Sequence record: PP496444.1
DNA: 64,000 nucleotides
Strand: one strand, 5' to 3'
Shown: piece by piece, positions 17,363 through 45,987 of the stretch
Position numbering within the stretch: position 1 is the first letter of the stretch
How the letters are laid out: every line of letters starts with the position of its first letter
The notes under the pieces: generated by a model
The model's input: the letters and a program-made list of their open reading frames with translations, nothing else
What the model was told of the DNA's origin: nothing
The model's database searches: none
Program-made: the position numbers and the translations under genes

Positions 17363-17423
17363 GGTACGTTCCTCAAAGGAAGGATAGATAAAAACGGATG
17401 ATTGTCTTGGGTTAGATCAACCC

Positions 17424-22900: not shown

Positions 22901-22960
22901 ATAATCAGGATTGCGCACCATATCAGCATGGGGCATATCGGATATATAGGAGTAGATCAT
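19928..22960 (-). CDS. Large protein with C-terminal family-A/TV-Pol-like nucleotide polymerase domain
   Basis: SPRLY..NGFSALP (motif 2-like), YNYDIASCHP (motif A), CKKVFISTLYG (motif B), QEHDG (motif C); visibly more AT-rich than flanks. Confidence 0.6.
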   Translation of the reverse strand: MIYSYISDMPHADMVRNPDYVFSCYRNPQVIKALAGLIPDVKYPSRGYPSQALLDSMATYIRHFPEAKAVTDDLPLVQTSVPLIRSHVIKPSLDASENLLANGKCWLDTKVIGSPTVVTPELGYYILDAYEELVIRMAARGYTPRSNCCYGLAMIISRLVVLFPVLLDRYFKGREAVYDSPTDNAINSMYEMMTGGYYSNAMCREKESKGIPITENDKVKLTLPLTLEGARAFYEWNRWREDKQVDDQSREGKIDVACYLENNGGYLSGEYFDTMDWSTMGEGWGLGTREGERRFEGLFYWDQSDKKTYAWPDVLKCLDQMGIMKLVTEHDIFRGKTKTFRMGESICSFVSEARTRVDRLWRKHTQRVMSGQKMTITQLPSNLVGENTLIPNGIYAFSLSGDVCMVFSSELPDGTVQSRGTRLKHIKTYHSVDHPVPAKVLMRRAALCNRLPYTKPAYAEIAEGIDLSGRLSVPPSLKQYATLLTQKQVEVDLNSLFDAFLAYQRQASTQAVSSVMFLLNKITNPENLRCTQSSLDRSDQLRVSHQSDCVIRVRSPRLYQPNGFSALPSSIKQAIMKDSGYYNYDIASCHPLIVHSLVTRYKDRLNHYVEESVIAKADKVFNSYLNKRWVENLLNLVEIKHPGLLTSMEYMFFTAGEFSTNSGMGSLYDWLSSEYGDGFRIVDGRAVFEDEDDCDPRHSNFGFYQSVNSEDYRGFEDVWEPTTFDKDFHAERFGAEWERCPETEEWRVANKEPVRQSKWLAAVRLNKQGYDGVSTLQSACKKVFISTLYGSNLSTSLGSLRMSRVFKQLVNDLYEGWFESNKKFPYMHPNAKTAMLCKVVEFSYLLMGCAKELADPVVQCVDSLTRMFLRHPDTKESDHPAMPINIDLIARRSSSMRKKLDKTKEEGKDKAHAVMLVNAIGQRAYFYQDKHLGAWINRSERGKAMHFILCGMEQAVMIEFNTKHQDILIAQEHDGMMTDAPLSVEDLKEFTEIAERKIGVPLVLVRKDFA

Positions 22961-30589: not shown

Positions 30590-30792
30590 GGTTGCCTCTC
30601 CACGCGCTGACTGAAGGTTACCTTACCTGTGTATTGAGCGGCGCTCCGTCCTCGACCCTTGACCATACGGTCCATCGCCTTGTCGATGGCTCGATTGAAC
30701 AACGCATAGGTGATACGCTGTTTCATCTCAGTCCGCAATTTTGAGGTGGCTCGTTGAGGTATAGTCAACGGATACCGGTCTACCTTCTTCAT
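30586..30792 (-). CDS. Small basic hypothetical protein
   Basis: ATGA overlap with the helicase stop (start MKKVDRY). Confidence 0.55.
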   Translation of the reverse strand: MKKVDRYPLTIPQRATSKLRTEMKQRITYALFNRAIDKAMDRMVKGRGRSAAQYTGKVTFSQRVERQP

Positions 30793-32402
30793 TTGTTCCA
30801 CTCCTTGCGAGCCTTCAACTGGGCTTCGGTAGGGGCCACCCGGAACCGTGTGTTCTGGGGTGACAAGTTCTTGAGCAATGTGGTGGTCACGCATTCGTGC
30901 GGCGTGATATGCAGCAGCAGGTCGCTGGCACGGGTGTACGAGACGTATTGAACGTGGGGCAGCTGCCCATCTTCACAGTCGAACCAGTCGTCGATGACCG
31001 CGACACGCTCGCTCTCCATCCCCTTCGCACCCCATGAGGTGTTAAGCTCCACACCTTTGCCGTGGTCGTTGGCAATGATCTTGGTGATGAACGTCTTCAC
31101 TTCGGCAGCACTGCCAAGGTCCCAGTTGGTGACGATGTACAGCGCAGCGTCTGCCGCATCCTTGATCAGTGGTTCCTTCGCCTCTTTGCGCAACTCATCC
31201 AAGGCCTTAACGAAGTCGAGAGTGGACTTGCGACCGCAACGCATGGCGACACCGATCACCTGCTCCAGCACTTTGGCCTTCTTGAAGGTAACCTCCAGTC
31301 CGCGATCCATGTACTCCAGCGCAATGCGGATCAGGTGCTTGTTACGGGCACTGACCACACGCTGCACGTCGAACTTGATCATGCTCTTGACGCGGTACGG
31401 GTCCTTCTTGGTGTGTGCCGTCAGCATCTTAACTTGTCCACCCTCAGCGAAGGCTTCCAGCGGCACGTTGGGGAACCTGCCTTTGACAAACTCAACGATC
31501 TTCGACTTGGACCGGTACGTGGTGGTCGATGGCAGGCGCTTGGCGTTGAACTCCTTGAACATCTCGGCCATACCCGCACTCAACCCACCCCGGAACGCAT
31601 AGATGGCCTGCCATGGATCACCGACGAAGACGAACAACATGCCGGGCTTCAGCCGACGGAACAGGCGCAACGTATCATGCTGCACAAGGTTGAAGTCTTG
31701 GAACTCATCGACGAACAACACGTCCGGCAGGATCTTCGCCAGCGTGGCGTACTGCGTGCGGATAAAGCTGTTGGACAGAACCATGCGGCTCATGTCGTTG
31801 AAGTCTACCGACGACGTGGTCTCATCGCTGGCTTCCAGCGCTTCGCAGATCTCAGGAAGCAGAGGCACCACCTTCTCATGCGGAATCAAGAAGCGATACT
31901 TGCCGGTGATCAACTCCTTGATCTTCTTCGGGTCGCTGTAGGGAATGCCCAATTCCCGAATACGCTCTCCGTGCCAGCGGATGTCCTTGTTCACCCGTGG
32001 CCCATCTTGCGGGAACAGTGCGTCCACCACCTGGAACCACTTGTCGAACATGACCGGCACCGCCTTAACTCCAGTCAAGGTCTTGAACAAGTCCAGGCCG
32101 TAGCTGTGCATGGTGGAGCTGGACACGGCTCTGTCCTTGATACGCTGATCGAACACCTTGGCGTTGTCCGTGTTGAACACGATGGCGCGCAGTGTCAGCC
32201 GTGGGCACTCTTTACGAAGACGGCGAATGGTCTCGATGATCAGGGTAGTCTTACCCGAGCCCGCACCGGCATCAATGCCCACTGCATCTTGGGGCTTGCC
32301 GGTGTACAAGTCTTTCGGCATCGACTTGGCTTTCTTCATGATCTCGTCGAAGATGTCATTCTGTTGCTTGGACCAAACTCTTTCAGTGGGTGACGTTGAC
32401 AT
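30789..32402 (-). CDS. UvrD/Rep-like superfamily 1 helicase
   Basis: AGAGSGKT, VDEFQD, VGDPWQAIYAFRG, TTYRS, AKGME, YVSYTRA. Confidence 0.9.
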   Translation of the reverse strand: MSTSPTERVWSKQQNDIFDEIMKKAKSMPKDLYTGKPQDAVGIDAGAGSGKTTLIIETIRRLRKECPRLTLRAIVFNTDNAKVFDQRIKDRAVSSSTMHSYGLDLFKTLTGVKAVPVMFDKWFQVVDALFPQDGPRVNKDIRWHGERIRELGIPYSDPKKIKELITGKYRFLIPHEKVVPLLPEICEALEASDETTSSVDFNDMSRMVLSNSFIRTQYATLAKILPDVLFVDEFQDFNLVQHDTLRLFRRLKPGMLFVFVGDPWQAIYAFRGGLSAGMAEMFKEFNAKRLPSTTTYRSKSKIVEFVKGRFPNVPLEAFAEGGQVKMLTAHTKKDPYRVKSMIKFDVQRVVSARNKHLIRIALEYMDRGLEVTFKKAKVLEQVIGVAMRCGRKSTLDFVKALDELRKEAKEPLIKDAADAALYIVTNWDLGSAAEVKTFITKIIANDHGKGVELNTSWGAKGMESERVAVIDDWFDCEDGQLPHVQYVSYTRASDLLLHITPHECVTTTLLKNLSPQNTRFRVAPTEAQLKARKEWNK

Positions 32403-32529: not shown

Positions 32530-34008
32530 ATGAAATCTGTAGCCATTGATTACCAAAAGATAGCCAAGGAGTGCCAGTGCACAGAGCTGCCGCCACGGGT
32601 AAGAGTAACCCGTGCACGGGTCTATCCAAACCTGAGGACGTGCCTACTCTATCTCAAGTACGATGCCAAAGGTGAACTGGTGCAAGCCGAGATCACCGCG
32701 CCGTACGACACATCCACCGAGCCAAAGGTGCGTGTGCTCAAACACCCGGACAAGAAGTCGGAGTTCCTTTCATTATATAGGGCGCTGATCCGCCACCAGA
32801 TTATACCGGAGTCGATACCGAAGAAAGGTAACGGCATTGCCCCGACGCTGGAGGTCATCGGTACACTGGTCAGTCTGCTGCCGGGGCGTGACGTTGAAAC
32901 CTTCCGCACGCTGACCCCGGCCATCCAGACCGGTGGTGTCATATACGTGCCACTGGTTACCTCGCGTCCGATGCCGATGGTGCAACACTGGATACCTGTC
33001 AGCCAGCATTCAGAGCTGGGGATGATCGAACTCATTGACACCGACAGCAAGCCTCTACTGAACCAGTGGATCAACAGGTTGAGCAACACGGCCACCGGCT
33101 ATGTGATCTACACGCCGGACGGTTCGCATGCACAGGAACTCCTCTGCTTCCGCGTACCCAACGTGCAAGGTGAGGAACTGTGCGTAGTCAAGAAGGTGGA
33201 CTTCACGCTGACCGTGGCCCGCAGTCTCAAGCCAGTGCTGACCGTATCGACCAAGAGCACGCGTGCCGTGTCCCGCATCCCCCTGCCACATTACCTGATG
33301 CTGCGCAATCACCACATCAAGGTGGGTACCGTGATCTCGCTGCGCCGTAACGACCGGGGCGGGCTGGTGTACCATGAGACGGTAGCGGAGGAAGGCATGA
33401 CACCCTTGCCTCTCTGCCCCTACTGTCACAGCGGATCTGTGCTGCTTCCCGGCAACAACGACGTGTACTGCAAGAACGACTCCTGCCGTGGCCTTGCCAA
33501 CGTGCGCCTGCACTACGTCTTGAACAACAAGCTGGATGTCAAGTACCTGAGCAACACCAAGGTGACAGCGCTGATCAACGACAAGCAGGACCTGTTCACC
33601 CTGCTCAAGACACCGACTCACCTACTGCGACACAGACCGGGCTTCGGTGCACGTACGGTCGATGCACTGGAGAAGAAGCTGGACAGCATTGCAAGTCTTC
33701 CGCTGCATACGCTGGCCGAACTGTCCTGCGCCTTCTACAACGTGGGCGTGCCCCCACTGGATGAGATGGTGTTCAAGAAGATCTTTTCCATCATGTCACT
33801 CGACTACCTGAAAGCGCTGCCGTCCACTGGCAAGATGTACAGTCAGTTGCTCGACATCGAAGGTATCCGCAACAACCGCGCAGTGGCTTTCCTAGCGGGT
33901 TGGCCTGCCTTTCAACAGTGGATGCTAGACCTGGATGCTGCCCTACAATCTCGCAGCGCAGTCTCCACCACGGTAAATAGCCCAAAACAAATTCGAGGTG
34001 TGCAATGA
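32530..34008 (+). CDS. NAD-dependent ligase (LigA) paralog, predicted catalytically inactive
   Basis: LigA-like architecture: LKYDAKGELVQA, YTPDG, OB fold (LKPVL, IKVGT), CPYC..C.N..C zinc finger, HhH (GFGARTV, IEGIR); KxDG replaced by NLRT and TRGDG lost. Confidence 0.7.
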   Translation: MKSVAIDYQKIAKECQCTELPPRVRVTRARVYPNLRTCLLYLKYDAKGELVQAEITAPYDTSTEPKVRVLKHPDKKSEFLSLYRALIRHQIIPESIPKKGNGIAPTLEVIGTLVSLLPGRDVETFRTLTPAIQTGGVIYVPLVTSRPMPMVQHWIPVSQHSELGMIELIDTDSKPLLNQWINRLSNTATGYVIYTPDGSHAQELLCFRVPNVQGEELCVVKKVDFTLTVARSLKPVLTVSTKSTRAVSRIPLPHYLMLRNHHIKVGTVISLRRNDRGGLVYHETVAEEGMTPLPLCPYCHSGSVLLPGNNDVYCKNDSCRGLANVRLHYVLNNKLDVKYLSNTKVTALINDKQDLFTLLKTPTHLLRHRPGFGARTVDALEKKLDSIASLPLHTLAELSCAFYNVGVPPLDEMVFKKIFSIMSLDYLKALPSTGKMYSQLLDIEGIRNNRAVAFLAGWPAFQQWMLDLDAALQSRSAVSTTVNSPKQIRGVQ

Positions 34009-34829
34009 GCAAGAACAAAGGAACACGTACCGCCGTGCTGGTCGGTGGAGGTTTGGACTCCCACGCATACATGGTGTTGAACGCTGATCGAGCGCAGACA
34101 GACTTCATTCATGTGGACTACGGCCAGCGGGTTGCAGTGGCCGAGAGAAACGCCGTGCTGCACATGGCCGAGAAGCTGGGCATTGCCCGCAGTCGTGTGT
34201 ATACGTTGATCTGCGGCAAGACGAACCACATGCGCAAAGTCAACGAAGGCGTCGGCGTGTTGTTCGGCACTGGCCCGGTCGAGATGGACAACGCGTTCGT
34301 GAAAGGACGCAACCTGTTCCTGATTCAGAAGGCCATCGAACTGGGGCATGGTCACGTGCACTTGACGTTGACGCAAGAACGTGGCCGGATGTTCCCCGAT
34401 GCCGATCTGGGATTCGTCCAGCTGGTGGACAATCTGATGCACCGCAGCTACGACGTGAGAGTTACTGCGCCCTACATCATGGAAGACAAGCATCGGGTGA
34501 TGTTCAAGGCGTATCGCCACTGCCCCGAGTTCATCGACATGTCTTTCACGTGCTGGGTCGGCCCTCATGTAGAGTGCGGCATGTGCCCCCACTGCGTCAA
34601 GAAGGAAAAGATTAAAGCCGAGATGGTTATCCAGAAAGCTGAGTACGATCTCAACAAGGATACCCGAGAGGTGCAGTGGGAACAAGTCAAAGCAGGCTAC
34701 GGCAGTGCATTGAAACCAAGCAGTGTTCAAATCTGTGAAGGAATAGCTGCACGTACGGATGAGGCATTAGTTTCATCTCCTATCCGTAGCCCTGATCAGG
34801 CCATGATCAAATCGATCCGAGGTAATTGA
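34005..34829 (+). CDS. QueC-family PP-loop ATP pyrophosphatase, paralog 1
   Basis: VGGGLDS, DYGQR..E, FVKGRNL, FPD..GF, APY...K, TCW...CGMCPHC. Confidence 0.85.
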   Translation: MSKNKGTRTAVLVGGGLDSHAYMVLNADRAQTDFIHVDYGQRVAVAERNAVLHMAEKLGIARSRVYTLICGKTNHMRKVNEGVGVLFGTGPVEMDNAFVKGRNLFLIQKAIELGHGHVHLTLTQERGRMFPDADLGFVQLVDNLMHRSYDVRVTAPYIMEDKHRVMFKAYRHCPEFIDMSFTCWVGPHVECGMCPHCVKKEKIKAEMVIQKAEYDLNKDTREVQWEQVKAGYGSALKPSSVQICEGIAARTDEALVSSPIRSPDQAMIKSIRGN

Positions 34830-34830
34830 C

Positions 34831-35598
34831 ATGAAAAAGTTCGCCAGCTGGTTCAAGCGTCTGCTGAGTAAGAAGCCCAAGTCGATCACGATGACGATGA
34901 CAGACGCCGGTGGCAAGTTGATCACCATTCACATACCACAAGGTGCGGGTGTCGAATACACTCTGTCGAAGTCGGGTACCCACTTGAACGTCTCGGTCAA
35001 GGACGACATCTTCGTACTGAGCACGAACGGTGGTGGAGGTGGTGGGAGCGGCGGTGGTTCCAGGCCTGGTGTCAATGGTGGCCCCGGTCATACGCCCGTG
35101 TATCCGCGCCAAACCGCCCCAGTGGGTGCAGGCGCTCCGAACGCGGGTTGCGCTGGGGATGCACCGAGTGGAGCAGGTGTAACGCCACCAGTGGGCGGAC
35201 AAGCATCGTTTCCTATTGGCGCCCGAGTAACCGTATCAGGTGGTGGCCGGTGTAGTGGTCTGGCGGGTGACGGGCGTGAACGTAAAGAACTCGGGGGTGG
35301 CCCCGGTCCCGACGGAGACAGCTTCGTCGCATCCCCCATTCGCAGTAGTGACCGAGCCTACATGATCCGAGGCTTGTACTACGTCATCACGACCCGCAAG
35401 ATAACAGGCGAGGAATATCCGATCCACGAACTTCTGCACTGGGGCAAGAAGAGCATCGAACTCATGGGCAAGTTCCACACAGTTCGAGATGCTATCGACG
35501 AACTCAAGAAGCAGCTGGGTATCGTGTTAGACGATATTACGGACTATCAGGTTGAATCCATCCCCAAACGCATGTGCAAGCCCCCGCGTAAACCTTGA
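34831..35598 (+). CDS. Gly/Pro-rich hypothetical protein between the two QueC paralogs
   Basis: Basic amphipathic N-terminus, NGGGGGGSGGGS tract, shared VxSPIRSxDxA motif. Confidence 0.7.
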   Translation: MKKFASWFKRLLSKKPKSITMTMTDAGGKLITIHIPQGAGVEYTLSKSGTHLNVSVKDDIFVLSTNGGGGGGSGGGSRPGVNGGPGHTPVYPRQTAPVGAGAPNAGCAGDAPSGAGVTPPVGGQASFPIGARVTVSGGGRCSGLAGDGRERKELGGGPGPDGDSFVASPIRSSDRAYMIRGLYYVITTRKITGEEYPIHELLHWGKKSIELMGKFHTVRDAIDELKKQLGIVLDDITDYQVESIPKRMCKPPRKP

Positions 35599-35636
35599 GC
35601 GGGTAAATGGCTCGTAACTAATCCGGAGACATCAGC

Positions 35637-36455
35637 ATGAACGCTACACCGCCAAAGATCCTTATCGCATTCAGCGCTGGCACAGATTCAACGACAGCGG
35701 CCTACTACTACCGAGGTCTTGGGTATCAGGTAACGCTGGCTGTGTTTGACGATGGCCCCTGCAACGACCCGCAGAGCCCATTGTACGATCCGAGCAAGCC
35801 GGAAGACCTGACCAACTTCTCGGATGAGTTCTACGACTACGTGCGACTGCATCAGGATCACACTGCCCGGCACTTGCAGTTCGACTTCGTTGAGATGCGC
35901 TATCCGCAGCTTCCGTTGCTGGAAGCCAACAAGACGGCCAAGCCCGGTCGGGACAACGCAGCGGCAGCAGAGGCTGATGGCTTGGGGTTCTGGGTCGGCT
36001 TCAAAGGCCTGATGGCAATGATGCTGATGAGCCACGGTGCGGCCAACGGCTACGAGGCTGTGGTCTTCGGACACATGCCGTACAACAGCCATTACGAAGA
36101 TGAGCTGCCCCAGAACTTCGAGCTGCTGCGCCAGTACATGGTTACGGCCTACGGTAGCCGGGTAAACATCCCCCACATCTACCACCCGTTCTACCGCCCC
36201 AACTTCGATACCAAAGAAAAGGTTATCCAGCTGGCGTTGAACATCGGTGTGCCCCTGCGAGATACTTATTCGTGCCGCCGAGGTGAAGTGGAAACCCGAG
36301 GCGTTCTCCTGCCACTTCTTCGTGGTGGTAAATCCAGCTATGTGAATCCCACCTACCGCTGGAAGCATTGTGGTACTTGTGAGAACTGTGTCGAACGCAA
36401 GCGAGCCTTCGCGGCGCTGGGCATGAAAGACCCTGCCCCTTATATGGAACATTGA
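35637..36455 (+). CDS. QueC-family PP-loop ATP pyrophosphatase, paralog 2
   Basis: FSAGTDST, YED..PQNF, HPFY..TKEKVI, TYSC..HCGTCENCVERKRAF..G..DP..Y. Confidence 0.85.
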   Translation: MNATPPKILIAFSAGTDSTTAAYYYRGLGYQVTLAVFDDGPCNDPQSPLYDPSKPEDLTNFSDEFYDYVRLHQDHTARHLQFDFVEMRYPQLPLLEANKTAKPGRDNAAAAEADGLGFWVGFKGLMAMMLMSHGAANGYEAVVFGHMPYNSHYEDELPQNFELLRQYMVTAYGSRVNIPHIYHPFYRPNFDTKEKVIQLALNIGVPLRDTYSCRRGEVETRGVLLPLLRGGKSSYVNPTYRWKHCGTCENCVERKRAFAALGMKDPAPYMEH

Positions 36456-36456
36456 T

Positions 36457-37476
36457 ATGGCCCTTTCAATCTGGCCGCTGACCGAGGAAGAACTCGGTCA
36501 GAACCTAGTCAACGAACTGAATCGTACCAGCAAGGCGCTGGTTAACCGGCGTATGTGGTCTTTGCCACTGCTCCGGCGTTTGTTTTATCGGCGCACTGAG
36601 ATCGGTGTACCGGAACTGCTTCACGTCTGTTCCTCCAATTATCGGGGCCAGATTTACTTCTGCCTGCTTGTGAACTACCGAGACGTGGTGATGGGGAACC
36701 CTGAGCAATACGGCTGGGATCTCGCTGGCCGGTGGTTGTTCTACGACGTGGATCTGTTGGATACCCCGGAGTTTAAGAAGGTTAAGCACGCCATCGGACA
36801 AGCTGCCCCTGTGATTACTGATGTGTCTTATGGTCAAGCATTCGTCCCAGATGAAGGTGGTATGGGGGACGAGCACTGGATCAAGAAACTGAAAGGTAAC
36901 TACCGCCCTCACATTTTCGGCGAAAAGTCAAAACAGGTTATAGTCAGTCAGACCTGTGGTATGGCAGCTACTCATGTGCTGACTGAGGCGGTAATGTCAT
37001 TCGGTATCCAGCGCGCCGAAAGATTCATCGCGGAAGGTCAAGCGGATGTCATGCCAGAGTTGTACGACCTACCCATGCAGCTGGCCGGGCTAGGGTCTAT
37101 ACCTGGAACCCGGATCGGCACCGTTTCACTCACCTGCCGGGATACCCGTGCACTGATCGGAACCTTGTCGTTCTACGTTGTGGCAGGTTTGGGTCACAGC
37201 GACATCATGTACATGCACGAGATGCTGATCGATCCTGATCCGAAGTGGAAGCCTCTGTCGGTAGCGGTCAACTTGCACATCCAGGCAATCATGTACGTGC
37301 GACATCTCAACGACCGATCCAATCAGAGTGCTGACTTGGTGATCAACCTCGGATTCAACTTGGACGAGAAGTATAACACCTACAAAGAGGTGTTCCGTCC
37401 GAACAAGTCAGAGATGGAAATCTACACCGGCATGCACACCGAGCCGGGTATTCCACTGTCCTGTTTCAAGGGGTAA
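36457..37476 (+). CDS. Fem/BioF2-like GNAT acyl/aminoacyltransferase 1
   Basis: WIKKLKGNYR helix; C-terminal INLG...YKEVF signature. Confidence 0.5.
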   Translation: MALSIWPLTEEELGQNLVNELNRTSKALVNRRMWSLPLLRRLFYRRTEIGVPELLHVCSSNYRGQIYFCLLVNYRDVVMGNPEQYGWDLAGRWLFYDVDLLDTPEFKKVKHAIGQAAPVITDVSYGQAFVPDEGGMGDEHWIKKLKGNYRPHIFGEKSKQVIVSQTCGMAATHVLTEAVMSFGIQRAERFIAEGQADVMPELYDLPMQLAGLGSIPGTRIGTVSLTCRDTRALIGTLSFYVVAGLGHSDIMYMHEMLIDPDPKWKPLSVAVNLHIQAIMYVRHLNDRSNQSADLVINLGFNLDEKYNTYKEVFRPNKSEMEIYTGMHTEPGIPLSCFKG

Positions 37477-37479
37477 GAC

Positions 37480-38490
37480 ATGTACACTCCGTATTCCCAA
37501 AATAGCCTTATGCAGTCCATCCCGCTGGACGACAAAGGCACGTTCGCACATCCGCCGTACACCATGGAAGGGGAGTTCACCGACGTGTGGACAAACCCCA
37601 ATCTGTATGGGTTCACCAGCCTGCTGGACGGGCAGAGAAATAGCCGGACGTACCGGTACTGGATGACGTCTCACAACCTTCCCGCGTTGTTCATCGGCCC
37701 GCATCATGAAGACTCTTTCTGGTTTGAATTCAGCACGGGATTGGAACCCACCTGTATGCTGGATTACAACGATATCAATATCCAAGGTGGTATGAAAGAC
37801 TTCCTCGAACGGTTGACTGCATCTCGTCGGCGCGCACTACTCAAGGCAATGGAAACGGATACGGTCATCCACAAGGCAGGAACCGTAGCCAACTTCAATC
37901 TGTATTATCCGGTTGAAGGACGCCTGTACAGCCTGACATCCATTCACGAACGCCGGGTGCTAAAAGACATCTCCGAGTTTATCGAGTCTAAACTCTGGAG
38001 TATGAAGCAACAACCTACTGACCTCACGTACGGGGCTTTCACCACCTTGATGAATCATATCAGGTTGAAGCAACGTGAAGATACACCGCTGGGCCATAAG
38101 TTGCGCAACGTCCAGCTCTTGGTGATCCGAGATGAACGTTCCGGCTTTATCCTGTCGGTTCATCTGGTGGGGATACACACGCTGAAAGATGATAACATGA
38201 ATCCCACCAAGACGTACTTGCACTCCTTTGCGCGCATCACTGTTCTTCATGCACGGATTGCGTTGCTCACGCTGATCAAGGCAGTTCAAGAGTTAAACGT
38301 CACCAGTCAGTACGCATCCCGTGCACAGGAAAAGATCGACTACATCGACGTAAGCAACGTGGTGCTGTCCGAGCGAGAGCAGTACAAGTCGGACTTCTTC
38401 ACTGACCGGTCACAGGTACACGCATGGGCATCCCCGGCGTTGTTGGAACGGCAGTTACCTTTCATCCATCCCCGTGACATAACTCTGTAA
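37480..38490 (+). CDS. Fem/BioF2-like GNAT 2
   Basis: DFLERLTASRRRALLKA; C-terminal YIDV...QYKSDF. Confidence 0.55.
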   Translation: MYTPYSQNSLMQSIPLDDKGTFAHPPYTMEGEFTDVWTNPNLYGFTSLLDGQRNSRTYRYWMTSHNLPALFIGPHHEDSFWFEFSTGLEPTCMLDYNDINIQGGMKDFLERLTASRRRALLKAMETDTVIHKAGTVANFNLYYPVEGRLYSLTSIHERRVLKDISEFIESKLWSMKQQPTDLTYGAFTTLMNHIRLKQREDTPLGHKLRNVQLLVIRDERSGFILSVHLVGIHTLKDDNMNPTKTYLHSFARITVLHARIALLTLIKAVQELNVTSQYASRAQEKIDYIDVSNVVLSEREQYKSDFFTDRSQVHAWASPALLERQLPFIHPRDITL

Positions 38491-38536
38491 ATGATGGGAA
38501 CAGCCCCACCATCACTTTATCTATAGGGTAGTTCCC

Positions 38537-39586
38537 ATGCAAGACTATGACAAGACTTACATTAGCAGCTGTTTAGTTACCAATCTGGTGTACGCGGGTT
38601 TGAACAATCTTATCACGCCCCGTGCCATTGACCTGCTGATCGAACATCAGGCAGCTATGGAAAACATCTATGCCAATTTGGAAACGGCCTATCAGATTCC
38701 ACAACCTTACCCAAAGGAGTCATTCTACTTTCCGTCAGAGGGTACGCCGGTGTTGGTGTCCGATTACCTGAATTCCAGTCCTGCTATTCGTTGCGGAGAA
38801 CTGGCCGGGTTCGAGGCTAAGCCCAGTGCATTCTTCATGCCGACTGCTGGCATCTTCCCGGAACATCGCATCGACGTACGTGGCCTGTCTTTACGCGACT
38901 TCGATCATTATCTAGTCGAACGTGCGGAAGTATCGCGTATCACTACCAATCTGGTGGCCGACAAGTTCCGTTGCGAGACCCACGTGTACAAAGCGGATGA
39001 AGATCACGTCCTGATCCATGACGCCGAACGGCTGGGTATCAGTCAAGCGGACTTCCGCCGCATGTGGGTACAGACCCGCCGCCGGGAAATCGCTGACAAC
39101 TATCTGCAGCACATGCCCATCGAAGACTCCGCCAAGGATGATCAGGTGGTGCGACTGGTCAACGAAGACGTAGCACGGGTGTTCGCCCAGAACGTTGATT
39201 ATGACCGCATGGTTCCGCCTGAGATGATCTTCGACGGGCAGGGTAAGCCAGTGCTGACCGTGCTGAAAGATTGCAACGCCAAGGTGCTAGGGATCGGCGT
39301 ATACGTCATCTACAAGTCCGCTGACCCTGAACAAGACAGCGAGCTGCACTGGCGCGGTGCTTTCTACGACCACGAAGATCCACGCACGGCATCCATGGGC
39401 ATTGAACACGCTCTGGTCGCCAGCGCACTGCACACGGCGTACGCCTGCAATGCGGTCCTGTACTTGACCAAGGCACCGAAGTCCGTGTGTGACGCATGGA
39501 AGACGGAAGTGCACCAAGGTTACGGCCTGGTCCGTAATGCGATGCCGGAACTGTCTGACACCCCTTACATTCTGGCTATCCAGTAA
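38537..39586 (+). CDS. Fem/BioF2-like GNAT 3 (more divergent)
   Basis: DFRRMWVQTRRREI; LGIGVY...GAFYD..SMGIEHAL; C-terminal LYL...AWK. Confidence 0.4.
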   Translation: MQDYDKTYISSCLVTNLVYAGLNNLITPRAIDLLIEHQAAMENIYANLETAYQIPQPYPKESFYFPSEGTPVLVSDYLNSSPAIRCGELAGFEAKPSAFFMPTAGIFPEHRIDVRGLSLRDFDHYLVERAEVSRITTNLVADKFRCETHVYKADEDHVLIHDAERLGISQADFRRMWVQTRRREIADNYLQHMPIEDSAKDDQVVRLVNEDVARVFAQNVDYDRMVPPEMIFDGQGKPVLTVLKDCNAKVLGIGVYVIYKSADPEQDSELHWRGAFYDHEDPRTASMGIEHALVASALHTAYACNAVLYLTKAPKSVCDAWKTEVHQGYGLVRNAMPELSDTPYILAIQ

Positions 39587-39619
39587 ATAGCCGGTAACTC
39601 CATCCATTGAGGTACTTCC

Positions 39620-41704
39620 ATGAAATCCGTGAACCCCATCTTCAAGCACGTTCCCCAGTTCGACTGGCCTGTCATTCCGCGTGCACAGTGGGAAGAGATC
39701 ATCAAGGGCAAAGAGCACGTGATGTTCGACTCTTTCTCGCAACTCGCCCAGGTGCTGGCTATCCCGGCGAGCAGTTACCAGTTCTACTTTGAAGATGGGT
39801 CCACGTTGTTCGCTGGTCCCGAAGCAACCTTCACCGCCGCCCCGTATCCGTTGTATCAGGATCTGGAATTCGTGCTGACCCCCGACGAGACGTTGGTACC
39901 CGGTCTTGCACTGGATACCAAACCGTGGGGCCTGTACACCGATGAATGGGTGGACAAGTACGAAGGTGAGGACAAGGGAGACCTTGATCACAAGACCGGG
40001 TTTGAGTTCATCCCGTTGCCAGACGCCTTGAAACTGGTAACCCTCAACCCGGAGACCATGCAGCTCCAGTACACCGCCATCGAGAGCTTCACGTACGACG
40101 GCGTGACCTACGTATACCTGCTGGCTGATGGCGTGTGCTGGGTACTGGCGGGCAAGTCCGGTGGTCTGGTTGCCAGCGAGCAGGACAAAGGCGCAGCGTA
40201 CATCATGGTGTCTCATCCCGAGTTCGGCGGGTGCAGCGTAGACAACATGTACGCCAGCGAGTTCGGTGAAGAAGACGCGACGTTCTACGTCCAAGACGAG
40301 GAACACAACTACCTGGACGCGGCTAACCGTATCTTCGAGGAAGCCAAGGGGGTAGGTGCTGGTACGTTCCTGACCATCGAGACCGGTGATGGACTGCCGA
40401 CGGCACTGGCCTACAACCTGCGGCACAGTGATGTGTCCCATGTTAACCTGCCGATGCACAACATCCACCAGTTCACCGTGTTGCACGAGAAGCTGGGTGA
40501 GACTCCTAACTTCTCCGATGCGCCGGAAGCGTGCCGCATGAAAGAGGTGATGGAGTATCTGGCGGACCCTGAGTCCCCGGTAGACCATTACTGGTCGGCC
40601 ATCATGGTGCTGGAGAAGAACTTCCCCGGCTTCGCGGAAGCGTTGAAAGACTCCAGCGTCCCGACCCGCGACATCGTGCACTCCAAACAGGCATTCAGCT
40701 TGGAGATCGATCGTCAGTTCGGCAAGGAAGTGGCGAGCAAGATCGGTCTGAACACTGGCGTCTTCGCCCAAGTAAAAGACCGCGATGAGTGGCTGGCGAT
40801 CAAAGACAAGTTCCCTACGCCTTTTGTGGCCGTCAAGTACAACACCAAACACTTCATCGGTATCTTCGACAAGGAAGAGGTGGCGAAGTCCATCAATATG
40901 TGGCTGGCCGGTCAACCCGGAGAGTCGCTGATGATCGAAGAGTACTTCGGTGAAGGCAATCAGGAATTCAACCTGTGCTACGTGATCAACGAAGAGTTCG
41001 TGCAGCCGATGCTGTTCCTGTGCGAAGTCAACAAGATCCTCGGCAATGACACCGGTGGCAAAGGCGGCAACACACTGGCCTGCCATGATGCCCGCATCGA
41101 GAAGTACCCGGAGGCCTTCGAGCCGGTCAACGCTGCGCTGGCTCATCTGCATGAACACGTGGAAGGTGTGAAGGGCTGGGTTGATCTGAGCTTCATGGTC
41201 CGAGACGGCGTCCCGTACTTCACAGAGTGGTGCATCCGCATCGGCTGCTCCAACAACGCCACCATCGTGCGCCAGATGGAAACGCCGCTTAACATCCTGC
41301 TGACTAACCTGACCAACAAAGAATACACCGACGTGAGCTGGAAGCATTCGATGTCTGTTAGCGTGGACATCTACAGCATGCCGCTGTCCGCAGGCAACGA
41401 TGCCAACATGCAGTTCACAGACTCGCTGACCAACCCGGTGCAGATGGTGTCGCCACTCAATCTGGAACTGGCCGCTGAGAGTTTCTTCGACCCGATTGAC
41501 TCGGCCTGGAACGCGGTGTTCGATGGTTACATCGTCGAGGCTTACAACCGCTACGGCACCGTCTCGGGCTACTCCACCAACTGGCAGTTCGCCTGCAGCG
41601 CGGCTTATAACCACTTGAAAGATCAGTCGGTGTTGTACGGAGCGTACCGTGATGCGCCTGTTCACCACGACCCACTGACTCTGTTCCCTTTCCTCAAGGC
41701 GTAA
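39620..41704 (+). CDS. PurD(GARS)-like ATP-grasp ligase with a ~300-aa N-terminal extension
   Basis: LEIDRQFGKEV..KIGL, IEEYF.G.EF, NKILGNDTGGKGGN, GWVDLSFMV..G.PYFTEWCIRIG parallel PurD motifs. Confidence 0.7.
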   Translation: MKSVNPIFKHVPQFDWPVIPRAQWEEIIKGKEHVMFDSFSQLAQVLAIPASSYQFYFEDGSTLFAGPEATFTAAPYPLYQDLEFVLTPDETLVPGLALDTKPWGLYTDEWVDKYEGEDKGDLDHKTGFEFIPLPDALKLVTLNPETMQLQYTAIESFTYDGVTYVYLLADGVCWVLAGKSGGLVASEQDKGAAYIMVSHPEFGGCSVDNMYASEFGEEDATFYVQDEEHNYLDAANRIFEEAKGVGAGTFLTIETGDGLPTALAYNLRHSDVSHVNLPMHNIHQFTVLHEKLGETPNFSDAPEACRMKEVMEYLADPESPVDHYWSAIMVLEKNFPGFAEALKDSSVPTRDIVHSKQAFSLEIDRQFGKEVASKIGLNTGVFAQVKDRDEWLAIKDKFPTPFVAVKYNTKHFIGIFDKEEVAKSINMWLAGQPGESLMIEEYFGEGNQEFNLCYVINEEFVQPMLFLCEVNKILGNDTGGKGGNTLACHDARIEKYPEAFEPVNAALAHLHEHVEGVKGWVDLSFMVRDGVPYFTEWCIRIGCSNNATIVRQMETPLNILLTNLTNKEYTDVSWKHSMSVSVDIYSMPLSAGNDANMQFTDSLTNPVQMVSPLNLELAAESFFDPIDSAWNAVFDGYIVEAYNRYGTVSGYSTNWQFACSAAYNHLKDQSVLYGAYRDAPVHHDPLTLFPFLKA

Positions 41705-41707
41705 TCC

Positions 41708-42871
41708 ATGAGCACTCCATTCCAACAGTTCACCCTAGATGAGTGGATTCGCTACATGCGAGGCGAATCCACTATCTGGCGTATGTACGCCGACGATCAT
41801 CCCGACAGGGTTGAGTTCAGCCCGGTATGGCGTGACGAGATGTACCGGTTGATGGTGCAGTTCAAAGAACTGCTGCCGATGTCGTTCTCCAATCCGGTGT
41901 ACGGCTTCACCGAAGGCTTTTTTGAAGGGTTTGGACTCCAGCCCTTCTACGGCGATGATCCGTTCAATCCGATGGTTCAACCTCTAAGCCACCCTTTGGT
42001 GCACGTGGGCTTCCCGCTCACGCTGGACGAGATGGCATCAAGCATGAAGGACTGGCAGTCCCTGAGCGATCACCTGGGGCGTCCGCAGCTGGTCGATACA
42101 TTCGAGCCGGTTCCGTTGCTATCGCGCAACCTGTACGAGCCTAACGCGTTGCTGACCGTACGGAACAAGGAAGAGATCGTGATGAACGGAGGCTGGTCCA
42201 GTAGATACTTCCTCTGGCTGAACAGTCCGATCACCGAACTCAAAGGTAACTTCGACATTTATCTGGCCAGCCTGACCAAGAAGCGCCGCTACAAAGTGAA
42301 ACAGGCACTGGCGACGGTCGGCACTGAAGAAAACCCGGCTATCAGTGTCAGTACCGGCAAAGGTTTCGGTTACAGTGAGCTGGCAGATCAAGTAGACAGC
42401 ATCCTCGCGACATTTGAAGATCCAGTGGACATCGAGTGCATGCTTCTTCAGCTGCTGTTCGGCGTAGCAACCTGTCACACGCACCCTCATCTGGTCGATA
42501 TCGTTTATGCAGATGAGCAGTTGGGGATCTTCATCAAGCGCAACGGCCACACGATGAACTTCCTCTACAACCGCGACCCGGACAACCGCGCTGATTCAGG
42601 CATCAACCTGCTGACCCAGTACGTGCGCCACTTGCACGAGAACGGCCCGGCAGACATTGCCTACGTGGACCCGACATGTCGATATCGGCCTGACGAGGAC
42701 AGTATGAACACCTACAAGCGGGTGATCACCAACGAGAACCGGTATCACCCAATGCCATTCGTCTCGGCTGACCCTGCGCATATCGAAGGTGTGCTAACCC
42801 CGGCGTTCATTGCGGGTATCTGGCAGCTGGATGCGACCAACGGCCCGGCCAATCCTGAGATGATGGAGTAA
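41708..42871 (+). CDS. Fem/BioF2-like GNAT 4
   Basis: FDIYLASLTKKRRYKVKQA (Acetyltransf_6-type signature); C-terminal YVD...TYKRV. Confidence 0.6.
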   Translation: MSTPFQQFTLDEWIRYMRGESTIWRMYADDHPDRVEFSPVWRDEMYRLMVQFKELLPMSFSNPVYGFTEGFFEGFGLQPFYGDDPFNPMVQPLSHPLVHVGFPLTLDEMASSMKDWQSLSDHLGRPQLVDTFEPVPLLSRNLYEPNALLTVRNKEEIVMNGGWSSRYFLWLNSPITELKGNFDIYLASLTKKRRYKVKQALATVGTEENPAISVSTGKGFGYSELADQVDSILATFEDPVDIECMLLQLLFGVATCHTHPHLVDIVYADEQLGIFIKRNGHTMNFLYNRDPDNRADSGINLLTQYVRHLHENGPADIAYVDPTCRYRPDEDSMNTYKRVITNENRYHPMPFVSADPAHIEGVLTPAFIAGIWQLDATNGPANPEMME

Positions 42872-42873
42872 CC

Positions 42874-43821
42874 ATGGCAAAGCACAAAGTCAAGAGGTTG
42901 GAAATCAGCCACATCTACGACTTCTACCCGTTGTATCAGGTGATGTACGGGCGTGGCATGGAGACCAAAGCATTCGAGGTCTCCAAGTTCGCCAAGATGG
43001 TGCTGGACTTTGAAGCCTCAACCAGTACCCGCCGGAAGTGGGACGTGCTGGAGCCTTTTAGCGGTATCAGCGAGCACGAACACTTCTTCGCTGCGACCGG
43101 CCTGAACATCGAGCACTACACCGGCATGGACATCGTGGTTCCAGAGGGGGCCACGAACGTCATTCAAGGGGACATCATCACCACACCTCTGCCGTCGCAT
43201 GTCAACGCGGTGTTCGCCTTCTACTACAGTTTGCAGAATGTACGGGACGCCAAGACTGATATGCACACGCGGGCCAAGCTGGTTGAGTTCTTTGATAACG
43301 TTCTCGGTCACCTGCAAGTCAACGCGAACAAGAGTCGTATGCCCGCAGTGTTCGCGTTCCACCTTGACCAGCCTGAAGAACCTAATTACTATCTGACGTC
43401 CCGTGCCGACGTTGGAGGTGAGCAATCATGGATCGCACCCGCGTGTGGTCTGCTGGGTCAACATCTAGGGTGCAAGCCGACAGACACGCTGGAAGTGAAA
43501 TGCAATCTGGACACTTGGTACAACCGCATTCAGTGCACGGCGTACGATCAGGCAGAGGACATCCAGATTCTGGTAAATGGGCGAGTAACCGCTACCGTTG
43601 ACATCAAGAAGCCGTTCACCCATCGGGTCTGGACGGAGCATGAGGTCATCGATATCCTGCGGGGTCTGGACTACAAGCTGGATATCCGCATGTACAACGG
43701 CACCCTCTCCAATTACGACTTCGTGATGACCCGTCTGGATGACAAGCCCGTTCCCGGCGATGAAGAGGCTAATACTAATCAGATGACAACTGATATGCTG
43801 GTTGTCGTTAATCCGAGGTAA
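42874..43821 (+). CDS. Class I SAM-dependent methyltransferase 1
   Basis: VLEPFSG (motif I variant), YTGMDI, IQGDI, AVFAFYYSL. Confidence 0.7.
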   Translation: MAKHKVKRLEISHIYDFYPLYQVMYGRGMETKAFEVSKFAKMVLDFEASTSTRRKWDVLEPFSGISEHEHFFAATGLNIEHYTGMDIVVPEGATNVIQGDIITTPLPSHVNAVFAFYYSLQNVRDAKTDMHTRAKLVEFFDNVLGHLQVNANKSRMPAVFAFHLDQPEEPNYYLTSRADVGGEQSWIAPACGLLGQHLGCKPTDTLEVKCNLDTWYNRIQCTAYDQAEDIQILVNGRVTATVDIKKPFTHRVWTEHEVIDILRGLDYKLDIRMYNGTLSNYDFVMTRLDDKPVPGDEEANTNQMTTDMLVVVNPR

Positions 43822-43823
43822 GC

Positions 43824-44741
43824 ATGGCTAAGCCCAAAGTTCCAACCAGAACGGTCCCCACGTTGTACCAAGACTGGGGATTGTACAGCGCCATCTGCGA
43901 GCTGCCCGAGGTTACGATGCTGATGATGTCGCGCTTCGTGGCAGATCGGACCATCGAGCATGCTGAGCGCAACGATCTGGAAAGCGTGTCGATCATGGAG
44001 CCTTTCAGCGGCCCGATCCCGTACTACGAGCCAGACATCCGCAGCTTCCTGACTCGCGCTCGCGTTGATCTGGATACGTACGATCACGTCGAGTACCTGG
44101 ACCATGGTGAGCTGTCGGAAGATAACAGTATCATCATCGGTGACATCACCACCATCGACCTGAAACAGAAGTACGATGTCATCTACGGCAGTTACGGCAG
44201 CTTGGCCTGCTTGCTGCTGGATCAGACGCACAACAAAGCGTACGAGAAGTCGCATGCAGCGCTGGTCAACATCCGCGAGCACCTGAAACCCAACGGCATT
44301 TTCATCCTGAACGCCAACGGGTCCAGCGAAAGACTGTTGAACGATCTGCTGAACTCCGATGAGCCGGATCAGGAGATTCGTGTCCGTCCGGGGTCACAGC
44401 TGGGCAAGGCGTTCCGGCTCAAGCCAGACAGTAACGCGCTGCTTCGCTTCACCTATCAGGTGGACTACGACCGGTGCACCACCTGCACCATGTGCTACTA
44501 CAGCGATATGGTGCTGTCTGTAAATGGGGTTGACATCCAGCGCTGGGAGGTGGAATCCCCGACGTATCTTGCGCCGCTGGATGAACCCGAACTAATCCGA
44601 ATGGCAGGCATGGCGGGTTTCAATCTGGGCAGGACTGAGTTCTACGGATTGGACACCACCGGGTATCCTGCCTTCTTCAAGATGGATACGGTCTGCGACG
44701 GGGCATGGTCCCCCGCCGAATTCGTAGTCTTTCGCACCTAA
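43824..44741 (+). CDS. Class I SAM-dependent methyltransferase 2
   Basis: IMEPFSG, IIGDI, KYDVIY..YGSL, REHLKPNGIFIL. Confidence 0.8.
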   Translation: MAKPKVPTRTVPTLYQDWGLYSAICELPEVTMLMMSRFVADRTIEHAERNDLESVSIMEPFSGPIPYYEPDIRSFLTRARVDLDTYDHVEYLDHGELSEDNSIIIGDITTIDLKQKYDVIYGSYGSLACLLLDQTHNKAYEKSHAALVNIREHLKPNGIFILNANGSSERLLNDLLNSDEPDQEIRVRPGSQLGKAFRLKPDSNALLRFTYQVDYDRCTTCTMCYYSDMVLSVNGVDIQRWEVESPTYLAPLDEPELIRMAGMAGFNLGRTEFYGLDTTGYPAFFKMDTVCDGAWSPAEFVVFRT

Positions 44742-44751
44742 CGAGGTTCCT

Positions 44752-45987
44752 ATGAGCGTTATCATCCCCACCGTAGCGGCAGACAGTGGTCAGCACGACA
44801 TGATCATTCAAGGTTGTTCCACTGGTCGCGTCTCTATGGCTGAGCCTAACGAGGGCTCCAAACCCAAGTCGTCCAAGAAGCTGTACGAACGCGAAGACCT
44901 TATGGCGTACGACAGCGAGTCGGAACACTGGCAGAAGCAGTTGGCCCGCCGCTACGCCCACCACGGTGAGATGGCTGGCGTGCTGAACAACGTCGAGGTG
45001 GTGCCGGAAGCCACCTACCAGAACTTCGACATGAAGATCACCCCGTACACCGCGCAGTTGATGGACCAGAACGATCCCAACTGCCCGATCCGTCTGCAGT
45101 ACATGCCGACCAACAAAGAGCTAGAGTCGATTCAGCGCGAAGAGACCATGCACAACGAACTGGGCGAGGAAGAAGACACCATCCCCGGTACCTCGGTAGT
45201 GCATCGCTATCCGCGTCGTGTCTTGTTCCTGACCACTACCCAGTGCGCCAGCTTTTGCCGTTACTGCACCCGTGCACGTATCGTCTCCCATGGCGGCGAA
45301 GCAGCGATCACCAAGAAGCACCTGGATGCCAGCATCGACTACATCGCGGGCAACAAGGACATCGAAGACGTGCTGCTGTCCGGCGGTGACCCGTTCATCC
45401 TCCCAGACAACAAGCTTGACGAGATCCTCGGTCGTATCCGCGCCGAAGCACCTCACGTTCGCTTCCTGCGTATCGGTAGCCGACTGCCGGTCCAGATGCC
45501 AACCCGTATCACTCCAGAGCTGTGCGAGATTCTGGAACGCCACAACGTCAACATGGTCAACATCCATGTGAACCATCCGAAAGAGGTAACTCCTCTGCTG
45601 GCGTCCCGGTTGAAGATGCTGCGCAAAGCGGGCATCATGCTGGGCAATCAGGCCGTCATGCTGAAAGGTGTGAACGACTCCATCGAGGTGATGACCGAGC
45701 TGTGCTTGCGCATGGTCGAGATGGGCGTGCGTCCGTACTACGTCTACTCCAACGATCCGGTGGCACAGGCTGCACACTTCACCGTGTCGCTGAAAGAGAT
45801 GTTGGACATCAACGAAGGCATGCGTGGCTTCCTGTCTGGCCCGGCGATGCCCCTGTTTATCTGTGACGGAATCGGCGGCCTTGGAAAACTTCCTGTCCAG
45901 AACGACTACGTCAAGGTTAACGACTCCGGTGAAATCTGGGGCCGTAACTACGAGGGTTTGACTACCCGAATGAAGCATCTGGAATAA
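44752..45987 (+). CDS. kamA: Lysine 2,3-aminomutase (radical SAM, PLP-dependent)
   Basis: HRYP.RVL, CASFCRYCTR, LLSGGDP, SRLPV..P.RIT, HVNHPKE, NQAVMLKGVND, PYYVYSND, DGIGGLGK (PLP lysine). Confidence 0.93.
   Translation: MSVIIPTVAADSGQHDMIIQGCSTGRVSMAEPNEGSKPKSSKKLYEREDLMAYDSESEHWQKQLARRYAHHGEMAGVLNNVEVVPEATYQNFDMKITPYTAQLMDQNDPNCPIRLQYMPTNKELESIQREETMHNELGEEEDTIPGTSVVHRYPRRVLFLTTTQCASFCRYCTRARIVSHGGEAAITKKHLDASIDYIAGNKDIEDVLLSGGDPFILPDNKLDEILGRIRAEAPHVRFLRIGSRLPVQMPTRITPELCEILERHNVNMVNIHVNHPKEVTPLLASRLKMLRKAGIMLGNQAVMLKGVNDSIEVMTELCLRMVEMGVRPYYVYSNDPVAQAAHFTVSLKEMLDINEGMRGFLSGPAMPLFICDGIGGLGKLPVQNDYVKVNDSGEIWGRNYEGLTTRMKHLE

Follow-up and report, generated by a model that had tools for sequence, protein, structure and literature searches.

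Why should a phage carry two different proteins of the QueC family in one operon, and what might they make? The question is raised by a 64,000-nucleotide stretch of DNA (the window), in which the 8 kb around the QueC pair are 100% identical to Pseudomonas phage vB_PpuM-Peetri (PP496444.1), a myovirus of P. putida with a genome of 200,264 bp. Peetri can be propagated on a laboratory strain of P. putida, a non-pathogen. The window covers positions 124001-188000 of that record, and a window position is the record position minus 124,000. In the GenBank record both proteins, here called QueC-1 and QueC-2, are already labelled 'QueC-like queuosine biosynthesis protein'. Eight sister phages are ~86% identical to Peetri, with unchanged gene order. 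The best reading of the system is a variant of phage 7-deazaguanine DNA modification with an accessory operon. That this operon belongs to a deazaguanine DNA-modification pathway is likely; that QueC-1 and QueC-2 are deeply diverged, adenylating, amide-forming enzymes of a dispersed pathway of this kind, with the operon elaborating the C7 substituent, is in our judgement an evenly balanced call.

Both proteins are recognizable members of the family. The initial annotation had credited each with a PP-loop (GGGLDS in QueC-1, SAGTDS in QueC-2) and a Cys4 zinc site, and coordinates, motifs and Pfam scores all agree: on the Pfam QueC model (PF06508) the two reach 66.1 and 45.4 bits against a gathering score of 22, with the alignment to QueC-2 covering its C-terminal half only. 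The four zinc cysteines are invariant within each paralog's own family. Beyond the CxxCxxC element there is almost no similarity between QueC-1 and QueC-2, and neither reaches the cut-off of 150.3 bits of the NCBIfam equivalog model TIGR00364 (61.8 for QueC-1, 21.8 for QueC-2). A PDB sequence search with QueC-2 returned no match.

The signature of canonical QueC has been tested by mutation and consists of SGGxDS, YxQxHxxE, VPxRN, YPDC and C(x)8CxxCxxC plus Y189, with Y35 and R99 essential in the E. coli enzyme; the same study of PF06508 also describes the Cap9 and QatC variants (PMC13329287, 2026). This signature is present in the aligned QueCs of E. coli, three phages and Vibrio phage GR11A. 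The PP-loops of the Peetri paralogs differ from SGGxDS by one substitution each, conserved within the respective family. In place of YxQxHxxE, QueC-1 has YGQ(x)5E, which lacks His39 and is one residue longer, and QueC-2 has FDDG with an insert of ~20 residues. The VPxRN motif reads xGRN in the QueC-1 family, with RN kept (VKGRN in Peetri), and G-F/Y-K in QueC-2, with RN lost (WVGFK in Peetri). YPDC is F-P/S-D-A in the QueC-1 family (FPDA in Peetri), with Cys134 replaced by Ala family-wide, and Y-x-D-E in QueC-2 (YEDE in Peetri); neither protein thus matches YxQxHxxE or YPDC. All four zinc cysteines are there in both, at a first spacing of x7 in QueC-1 and x31 in QueC-2 versus the canonical x8, and Y189 is W in QueC-1 (TCW) and R in QueC-2 (SCR, versus canonical TCY). 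The QueC-1 family therefore retains Y35, Q37, E42, R99, N100, the aromatic residue at 131 and D133 without His39 and Cys134, and the QueC-2 family has lost Y35, Q37, R99, N100 and Y189, several of them essential in E. coli.

A tree of 23 sequences points the same way. For Cap9 and QatC, model scores were compared instead (see below). QueC-1 forms a clade of its own outside all others (support 100/99); QueC-2 forms another (100/100), weakly joined (82/88) to the Gat-QueC domains; canonical QueCs branch apart from both. Both paralog branches are long, and the deep placements are unsafe for that reason. On motifs, curated cut-off and tree, neither paralog is, as far as sequence can tell, a canonical preQ0 synthase. 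The ratio of nonsynonymous to synonymous substitution rates (dN/dS) against two sister phages is low for both, at 0.12-0.14 for QueC-1 and 0.07-0.09 for QueC-2, arguing that these are maintained genes under purifying selection.

The C-terminal tail of QueC-1 is peculiar to Peetri. The protein is 274 amino acids long there versus 254 in the sister phages, and the tails are unrelated (window 34680-34829). The Peetri tail, SSPIRSPDQAMIKSIRG, resembles ASPIRSSDRAYMIRG within the glycine-rich open reading frame (ORF) downstream (window 35330-35375); no repeat at the DNA level was found behind this likeness. A third QueC-like candidate, Peetri_00005, gave a weak match that neither Pfam nor NCBIfam confirmed.

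The two paralogs had been taken for orphans on the ground that queD, queE, folE and dpdA are absent from the window. None of the four is indeed encoded there, but this simply reflects where the window was cut, and the orphan setting does not hold: FolE, a protein with a QueD domain, QueE and a protein of the TGT/DpdA family are all encoded in the same genome (Table 1). Judged by family membership, the genome holds a full but dispersed FolE/QueD-domain/QueE/DpdA set. The initial annotation had named three observations that together would speak against a non-canonical role: such a complete set, dPreQ0/dG+ in the DNA, and both proteins branching among canonical QueC. Of these, the set is present, and neither paralog branches in that way.

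The TGT/DpdA-family protein, Peetri_00102, is annotated as hypothetical only. The bridge to it was GR11A, in which a 'TGT domain-containing protein' is annotated two genes upstream of a sigma factor; Peetri_00102 is syntenic with that protein (48% identity, E = 1e-159) and 97% conserved among the sister phages. Its clade is confined to large phages, namely the Peetri group, GR7B, GR11A, the Xanthomonas/Erwinia 227-kb phages, NCTB, BCSR5 and Motura. Single-sequence phmmer searches of the six-frame genome ORFs (with E. coli Tgt, Saguaro DpdA/QueD and phiST DpdA3/DpdL/QueD) missed both DpdA and QueD, a false negative; the two proteins were recovered through synteny with GR11A, Pfam and a three-sequence QueD profile. 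Local hhalign comparisons of the operon families with TGT, DpdA3, QueD and DpdL found nothing and carry no weight, because the positive controls failed too (DpdL versus QueD 0.2%; Peetri DpdA versus Tgt 3.3%).

The QueD-domain protein, Peetri_00018, looks like a tandem T-fold, with part of the PTPS/QueD pattern in its N-terminal half (VVDF..K...DH) and SHG...GCQNIVHGH in its C-terminal half; the NCBIfam and Pfam QueD/PTPS matches fall in different halves. Two ORFs beside FolE, of 129 and 193 amino acids, were considered as substitutes for QueD or DpdL and found no support, by a weak method. An ORF of ~129 amino acids separates FolE from a clamp-like gene in Peetri and likewise in GR11A (L004:44328-44717; L008:10129-10518), with 30% identity over 86 residues between the two phages and no family match.

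The QueC genes travel with a conserved module. The pair occurs at seven loci, which belong to a rare lineage of large, T4-like phages, and the module is seen in Peetri and its eight sisters, in GR11A and in loci L005, L006, L007 and L014. A word-based homolog search with QueC-1 returned sister phages only, and with QueC-2 four metagenomic proteins of 42-52% identity; scans of IMG/VR added one further good locus and one weak one. In every recoverable context QueC-2 adjoins a gene of QueC-1 type. The GR11A module lies between the same helicase and topoisomerase II as that of Peetri and runs in the order LigA-like, DUF5591/ArcS2 core, canonical QueC (41% identical to E. coli QueC), QueC-1-type, and orthologs of X387, the ATP-grasp protein and KamA. 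The last three co-occur with QueC genes in three phage lineages. In Erwinia phage Ep032, whose DpdA falls in the same clade as Peetri's, genes of ArcS2-like and X387-like type are found around a Gat-QueC. Beside these three lies the gene for a GNAT fusion, a 545-residue protein (L024:4823-6460) in which a Fem-type Acetyltransf_6 domain is joined to an Acetyltransf_1 GNAT domain.

With a full set of partners in the genome, one might expect the ordinary pathway: QueC-1 as a fast-evolving, ammonia-using preQ0/ADG synthase, QueC-2 as either a degenerate structural partner or an amidotransferase of the G+ type that arose from Gat-QueC, dPreQ0, dADG or dG+ as the DNA base, and the ATP-grasp, Fem-type and KamA proteins unrelated to it. 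The residues and zinc site that QueC-1 retains are compatible with this, as is the weak grouping of QueC-2 with Gat-QueC domains, and altered QueCs such as CP220 QueC* and Gat-QueC do yield known bases, dADG and dG+ among them (PMC10516641). Gat-QueC domains share with QueC-1 the lack of His39 and Cys134 and a YGx(x)5E motif one residue longer, whereas CP220 QueC* keeps both residues. However, the GR11A operon holds a canonical QueC besides the QueC-1-type protein, and QueC-1 is therefore unlikely to be merely a preQ0 synthase. The recurrence of the ATP-grasp, X387 and KamA proteins beside QueC genes also speaks against their being bystanders. A decaying copy is an ill-fitting description of QueC-2, because it is more strongly conserved than QueC-1 and its dN/dS is the lowest, and the N-terminal class-II GATase (glutaminase) domain of Gat-QueC is present in neither Peetri paralog according to Pfam. 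We regard the ordinary pathway as unlikely, though it is the strongest of the competing explanations.

What, then, do the accompanying genes contribute? The operon in Peetri consists of 12 plus-strand genes (window 32530-45987) separated by gaps of <=46 nt and followed by a 151-nt gap; it sits among replication genes (helicase, topoisomerase II), and dN/dS indicates purifying selection on all its genes. Three of its products belong to families that form amides or handle amino acids. The KamA-family protein passes TIGR00238 (267.6 bits versus a cut-off of 199.2) and falls below the cut-offs of the Lys, Glu and Arg equivalogs; it has the Pfam Radical_SAM and LAM_C domains and a CxxxCxxC cluster motif (CASFCRYC at residue 165), with orthologs in GR11A (8e-117) and L014. 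The ATP-grasp domain matches NCBIfam purD (7.6e-9) and Pfam GARS_A (2e-4), with PurD 2xcl (1.5e-5) as the top PDB match and 1vkz also listed; an ortholog is present in GR11A (1e-80), and related ATP-grasps occur in L006, L007 and L014.

The third, X387, has homologs in GR11A, L005, L006, L007 and Ep032. Its conserved block YLASLTKKRRYKVKQAL suggests a Fem-type GNAT protein. Searched exhaustively with HMMER, a set of 1.84 billion proteins yielded 83 representative clusters, and Pfam recognizes Acetyltransf_6 in 5 and FemAB_like in 2 of 70 family members. With the enlarged alignment, AlphaFold2 gave a model of pLDDT 84.8 and pTM 0.87 (an earlier model from 4 sequences, pLDDT 44, was not used). 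The top PDB matches of this model in Foldseek, at probability 1.00, are Sbb17/Sba18 (streptothrisamine-bound), FemX, and the synthase domains of MprF/A-PGS/L-PGS, all of them aminoacyl-tRNA-dependent aminoacyl transferases; the tandem-GNAT fold is predicted to be common to them and X387, at TM-scores of only 0.4-0.5 and identities of 10-14%. On this model, X387 is probably a Fem-type aminoacyl-tRNA-dependent aminoacyl transferase.

These relatives also bear on a second alternative, in which the pathway does not end in DNA at all. The product would then be a free metabolite joining a deazapurine and an amino acid, in the manner of toyocamycin or streptothricin, or else a tRNA modification, with the TGT-family protein as a tRNA enzyme. 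The closest structural relatives of X387 do work in streptothricin-type small-molecule, peptidoglycan and lipid pathways, and the best NCBIfam match of Peetri_00102 is the archaeal tRNA enzyme TgtA. On the other hand, all phage TGT-family proteins characterised to date are DNA transglycosylases, DpdA being treated as the signature of deazaguanine DNA (PMC10516641); Peetri_00102 carries a lysine-rich C-terminal tail; and the operon begins with a LigA-like, putatively DNA-binding protein amid replication genes. An end product outside DNA is improbable.

A third alternative has in its favour the best PDB sequence match of QueC-1, which is Cap9 (9nto, 7e-8), ahead of B. subtilis QueC. Cap9 and QatC adenylate the carboxylate of 7-carboxy-7-deazaguanine (CDG) and join it in amide linkage to an amine that is not ammonia, and the QueC fold, PP-loop and Cys4 site are common to them and the Peetri paralogs. 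The paralogs might likewise link the carboxylate of a deazaguanine to the N-terminus of a protein such as the glycine-rich ORF product, or serve as decoys against a QueC-based host defence, a reading along the lines of the initial annotation. QueC-1 and Cap9 do have YxQ(x)5E and the C(x)7C spacing in common, and the pocket of QueC-2 is remodelled, as it is in QatC. Specific kinship is not borne out by closer comparison. The PADLOC Cap9 model (PDLC00911) gives 62.8 bits to QueC-1, 58.4 to E. coli QueC and 105.9 to the canonical QueC of phage Saguaro; because canonical QueCs score comparably or higher, the resemblance is generic, and the Cys of YxDC, which Cap9 retains, is missing from QueC-1. 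On the QatC model NF041925 (cut-off 280) QueC-2 reaches 13.1 bits and QueC-1 has no match, QatC scores overall being no higher than 13-15 bits, and the PADLOC QatC model matches neither. Cap9 (~185 amino acids) and QatC (~400, with extensions) also differ in length from the Peetri proteins (274 and 272).

The setting differs as well: the Peetri pair is phage-encoded and linked to DpdA, and Pfam, PHROG and NCBIfam scans of the operon found no CD-NTase, Cap10, QatA, QatB or QatD neighbours. No N-terminal-glycine target is apparent. The glycine-rich ORF product is 76-82% identical in the sister phages, with indels confined to its Gly-rich middle and a dN/dS of 0.18-0.22, and is specific to the Peetri group; L005, L006 and GR11A lack it and L007 has an unrelated ORF in its place, so that it is missing from 4 of the 6 other loci. 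It starts with MKKF rather than Met-Gly, and no operon protein has a Met-Gly start, which leaves little of its suggested role as a conserved substrate. For mimicry or antagonism of a host defence we found no evidence. A Cap9/QatC-like function of this kind is very improbable.

Of the non-canonical amide-forming role originally proposed, the position of both paralogs outside canonical QueC and their operon with KamA, ATP-grasp and Fem-type proteins stand, and the orphan setting and the protein target find no support. The leading idea, drawn from the sequences, is that an activated carboxylate would be coupled to the amine of an amino acid, and that the coupling would take place on a deazaguanine bound for DNA and not on a protein. 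FolE, the QueD-family T-fold protein and QueE would make CDG. QueC-1, with most of the CDG/ATP pocket intact, probably adenylates CDG at the C7 carboxylate; QueC-2, whose pocket is rebuilt, probably takes another substrate or nucleophile or serves as a partner subunit of QueC-1. KamA, the ATP-grasp protein and the Fem-type enzyme would supply and extend a side chain derived from an amino acid, and the operon, with its two methyltransferase-like proteins, would most likely make an amino-acid-bearing, possibly beta-amino-acid, C7 amide or amidine. The TGT/DpdA-family transglycosylase would swap guanine in the phage DNA for the deazaguanine base. That the product bears an amino acid at all is somewhat doubtful. 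The fully specified version is unlikely in all its details: QueC-1 and QueC-2 as amino-acid-specific amide ligases that join the C7 carboxylate to a (beta-)amino acid made by KamA, extension by the ATP-grasp protein and an aminoacyl-tRNA-using Fem-type enzyme, and installation by an unclassified DpdA clade. What is observed is which genes are present, the families they belong to, the state of their motifs, the selection acting on them and how the module is conserved; the substrates, the order of the steps, the choice between free base and DNA and the final product are what we infer from these observations.

Comparison with known systems places this proposal. A TGT/DpdA-family protein, FolE, QueE, a QueD domain and the QueC family are encoded by Peetri as they are in the described phage deazaguanine systems (9g, CAjan, CP220, nt-1, phiSM; Hutinet 2019, Cui 2023), and the dispersal of the genes is that of large Vibrio phages. 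In contrast to these systems, Peetri has two divergent QueC clades instead of a canonical QueC, and its ATP-grasp, Fem-type, KamA and methyltransferase-like partners are absent from them. The ArcS2 core of GR11A is as in phage nt-1, where this type of enzyme turns dPreQ0 into dG+ (PMC10516641); the nt-1 region compared did not include nt-1 DpdA2. For amide formation on a base, a precedent is the CmoX/CmoY system of 5-glycylcarboxymethylcytosine in Synechococcus phage S-B43, in which CmoY, an adenylating amide ligase of the same broad nucleotide alpha-hydrolase class, attaches a glycine to the carboxymethylcytosine of the DNA, providing a handle for hypermodification (PMC12783734). That system differs in acting at C5 of cytosine through an asparagine synthetase homolog and in having no transglycosylase, and the likeness is one of mechanism only. 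This precedent, the low-efficiency insertion of CDG by VH7D DpdA2 (PMC10516641) and the fact that the operon opens with a LigA-like, putatively DNA-binding protein together make a route in which the base is elaborated on DNA plausible.

A looser analogy is with archaeosine synthesis by ArcS-RaSEA, where a lysine adduct of preQ0 is formed and then processed by a radical-SAM enzyme. The GR11A operon likewise combines an ArcS core and QueC with a radical-SAM enzyme of lysine-related chemistry; the latter is of the KamA family rather than RaSEA, and no ArcS core is detectable in Peetri.

Several observations weigh against the proposed pathway. For all four distal partners the best NCBIfam match is the expected family, yet each falls below its curated cut-off (Peetri_00102 reaches 28.2 on tgt_general versus 47.6), and their exact activities are for that reason assumed. 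At E <= 1e-5, Peetri_00102 had no match in any phage whose DpdA1-4 has been characterised by experiment, and the protein could in principle act on tRNA. QueC-2 could be non-catalytic, because it has lost residues essential in E. coli QueC (PMC13329287), and the QueC tree, with its long branches, contains no Cap9 or QatC. KamA is not in the fetched parts of L005-L007 and is therefore not obligatory to the module, and co-location is no proof that the ATP-grasp, Fem-type and KamA proteins act on a deazaguanine. Finally, neither QueC nor DNA modification comes up in the paper on this phage collection (10.1101/2024.03.26.586772). The same paper reports that the G3 jumbo phages, Peetri included, give very low DNA yields on standard phage columns and that resident P. 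putida prophages restrict G3 jumbo phages more than 1000-fold; either property could relate to an unusual DNA chemistry, on circumstantial grounds only.

Table 1. Features of the Peetri genome discussed in the text (window positions unless marked as record positions)
Feature	Position	Strand	Remarks
UvrD-type helicase, divergent	30789-32402	-	Conserved left boundary of module; Pfam UvrD-helicase 2e-17
LigA-like protein, OB + Zn-finger + HhH modules	32530-34008	+	First operon gene; NCBIfam LigA region 394-497
QueC-1, divergent QueC-family PP-loop ATPase	34005-34829	+	274 amino acids; Pfam QueC 66.1 bits
QueC-1 PP-loop GGGLDS	34044-34061	+	Residues 14-19
QueC-1 Cys4 zinc site	34551-34595	+	C183/C191/C194/C197
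Gly/Pro-rich ORF	34831-35598	+	255 amino acids; Peetri-group-specific; no family match
QueC-2, QueC-family with remodelled pocket	35637-36455	+	272 amino acids; Pfam QueC 45.4 bits
QueC-2 PP-loop SAGTDS	35673-35690	+	Residues 13-18
QueC-2 Cys4 site	36273-36389	+	C213/C245/C248/C251, with 31-residue insert
X339	36457-37476	+	Homologs in L005, L014
X336	37480-38490	+	Homologs in L005, L014
X349	38537-39586	+	
PurD-like ATP-grasp carboxylate-amine ligase domain protein	39620-41704	+	694 amino acids; domain at residues ~355-586
X387, probable tandem-GNAT Fem-type protein	41708-42871	+	AlphaFold2 and Foldseek
X315	42874-43821	+	Family in L005, L006, L007
X305, distant X315 paralog	43824-44741	+	Weak Methyltransf_31/12 matches below cut-off
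KamA-family radical-SAM amino-acid 2,3-aminomutase	44752-45987	+	Last operon gene; TIGR00238
Peetri_00018, PTPS/QueD domain	record 17389-18498		Pfam 31.4 versus cut-off 22.4; GCQNIVHGH and conserved Glu
Peetri_00102, TGT/DpdA-family	record 82042-83412	-	Pfam TGT 32.8 versus 26.3; DSGGFQ, CNCPVC, lysine-rich C-terminal tail
QueE	record 192054-193025		PHROG QueE-like 3e-43
FolE	record 194991-195731		Pfam GTP_cyclohydroI 2e-39; PHROG 3e-46

The remaining operon genes are less easily read. The LigA-like gene overlaps the start of QueC-1 by 4 nt and has homologs directly upstream of the QueC genes in GR11A and L005; its PDB match to DNA ligase is weak. Its possible motif I is KYDA rather than KxDG, which may mean that the protein serves as a DNA-binding scaffold and does not act as a ligase. 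A full-length NAD-dependent ligase is also encoded elsewhere in the Peetri genome. The UvrD-type helicase is kept upstream of the module in GR11A, L005 and L006. X339, X336 and X349 have no Pfam, PHROG, NCBIfam or PDB match, and PDB profile searches with the X387, X315 and X339 families gave nothing significant. The family of X315 and X305 has the consensus ELFSGxSEH, with E and G invariant, and there are weak indications that the two could be Rossmann-fold, methyltransferase-like proteins. A scan for promoters and terminators gave fewer matches than expected by chance and is therefore uninformative.

Two further features lie away from the operon. A 1010-amino-acid ORF on the minus strand (window 19928-22960) covers the only clearly low-GC stretch of the window (0.47 at 20001-22000 versus ~0.55 in the rest). 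ARAGORN calls a tRNA-Gly(GCC) at L001:8353-8433, within the annotated coding sequence Peetri_00006; locus tag 00007 is skipped in the deposit, and the probable explanation is a false positive or a feature that was dropped.

The wider interest of the locus lies in a pairing: two QueC clades that do not satisfy the published catalytic signature occur together with three other kinds of enzyme that form amides or handle amino acids. To our knowledge, eight 7-deazaguanine derivatives occur in phage DNA, all with small C7 groups, and we know of none whose synthesis does without a QueC that is canonical or only slightly changed. An amino-acid-bearing deazaguanine as the product would add to this chemistry, and the QueC scaffold would have been re-used independently a third time for amines that are not ammonia, Cap9 and QatC being the earlier cases. 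Should the fully specified version hold, DNA would for the first time be shown to carry a peptidyl or aminoacyl deazaguanine, and one of its bases to be hypermodified in an aminoacyl-tRNA-dependent way. For the phages themselves, such a hypermodified deazaguanine would protect the DNA, and the module could help to explain how they deal with restriction and with modification-dependent defences.

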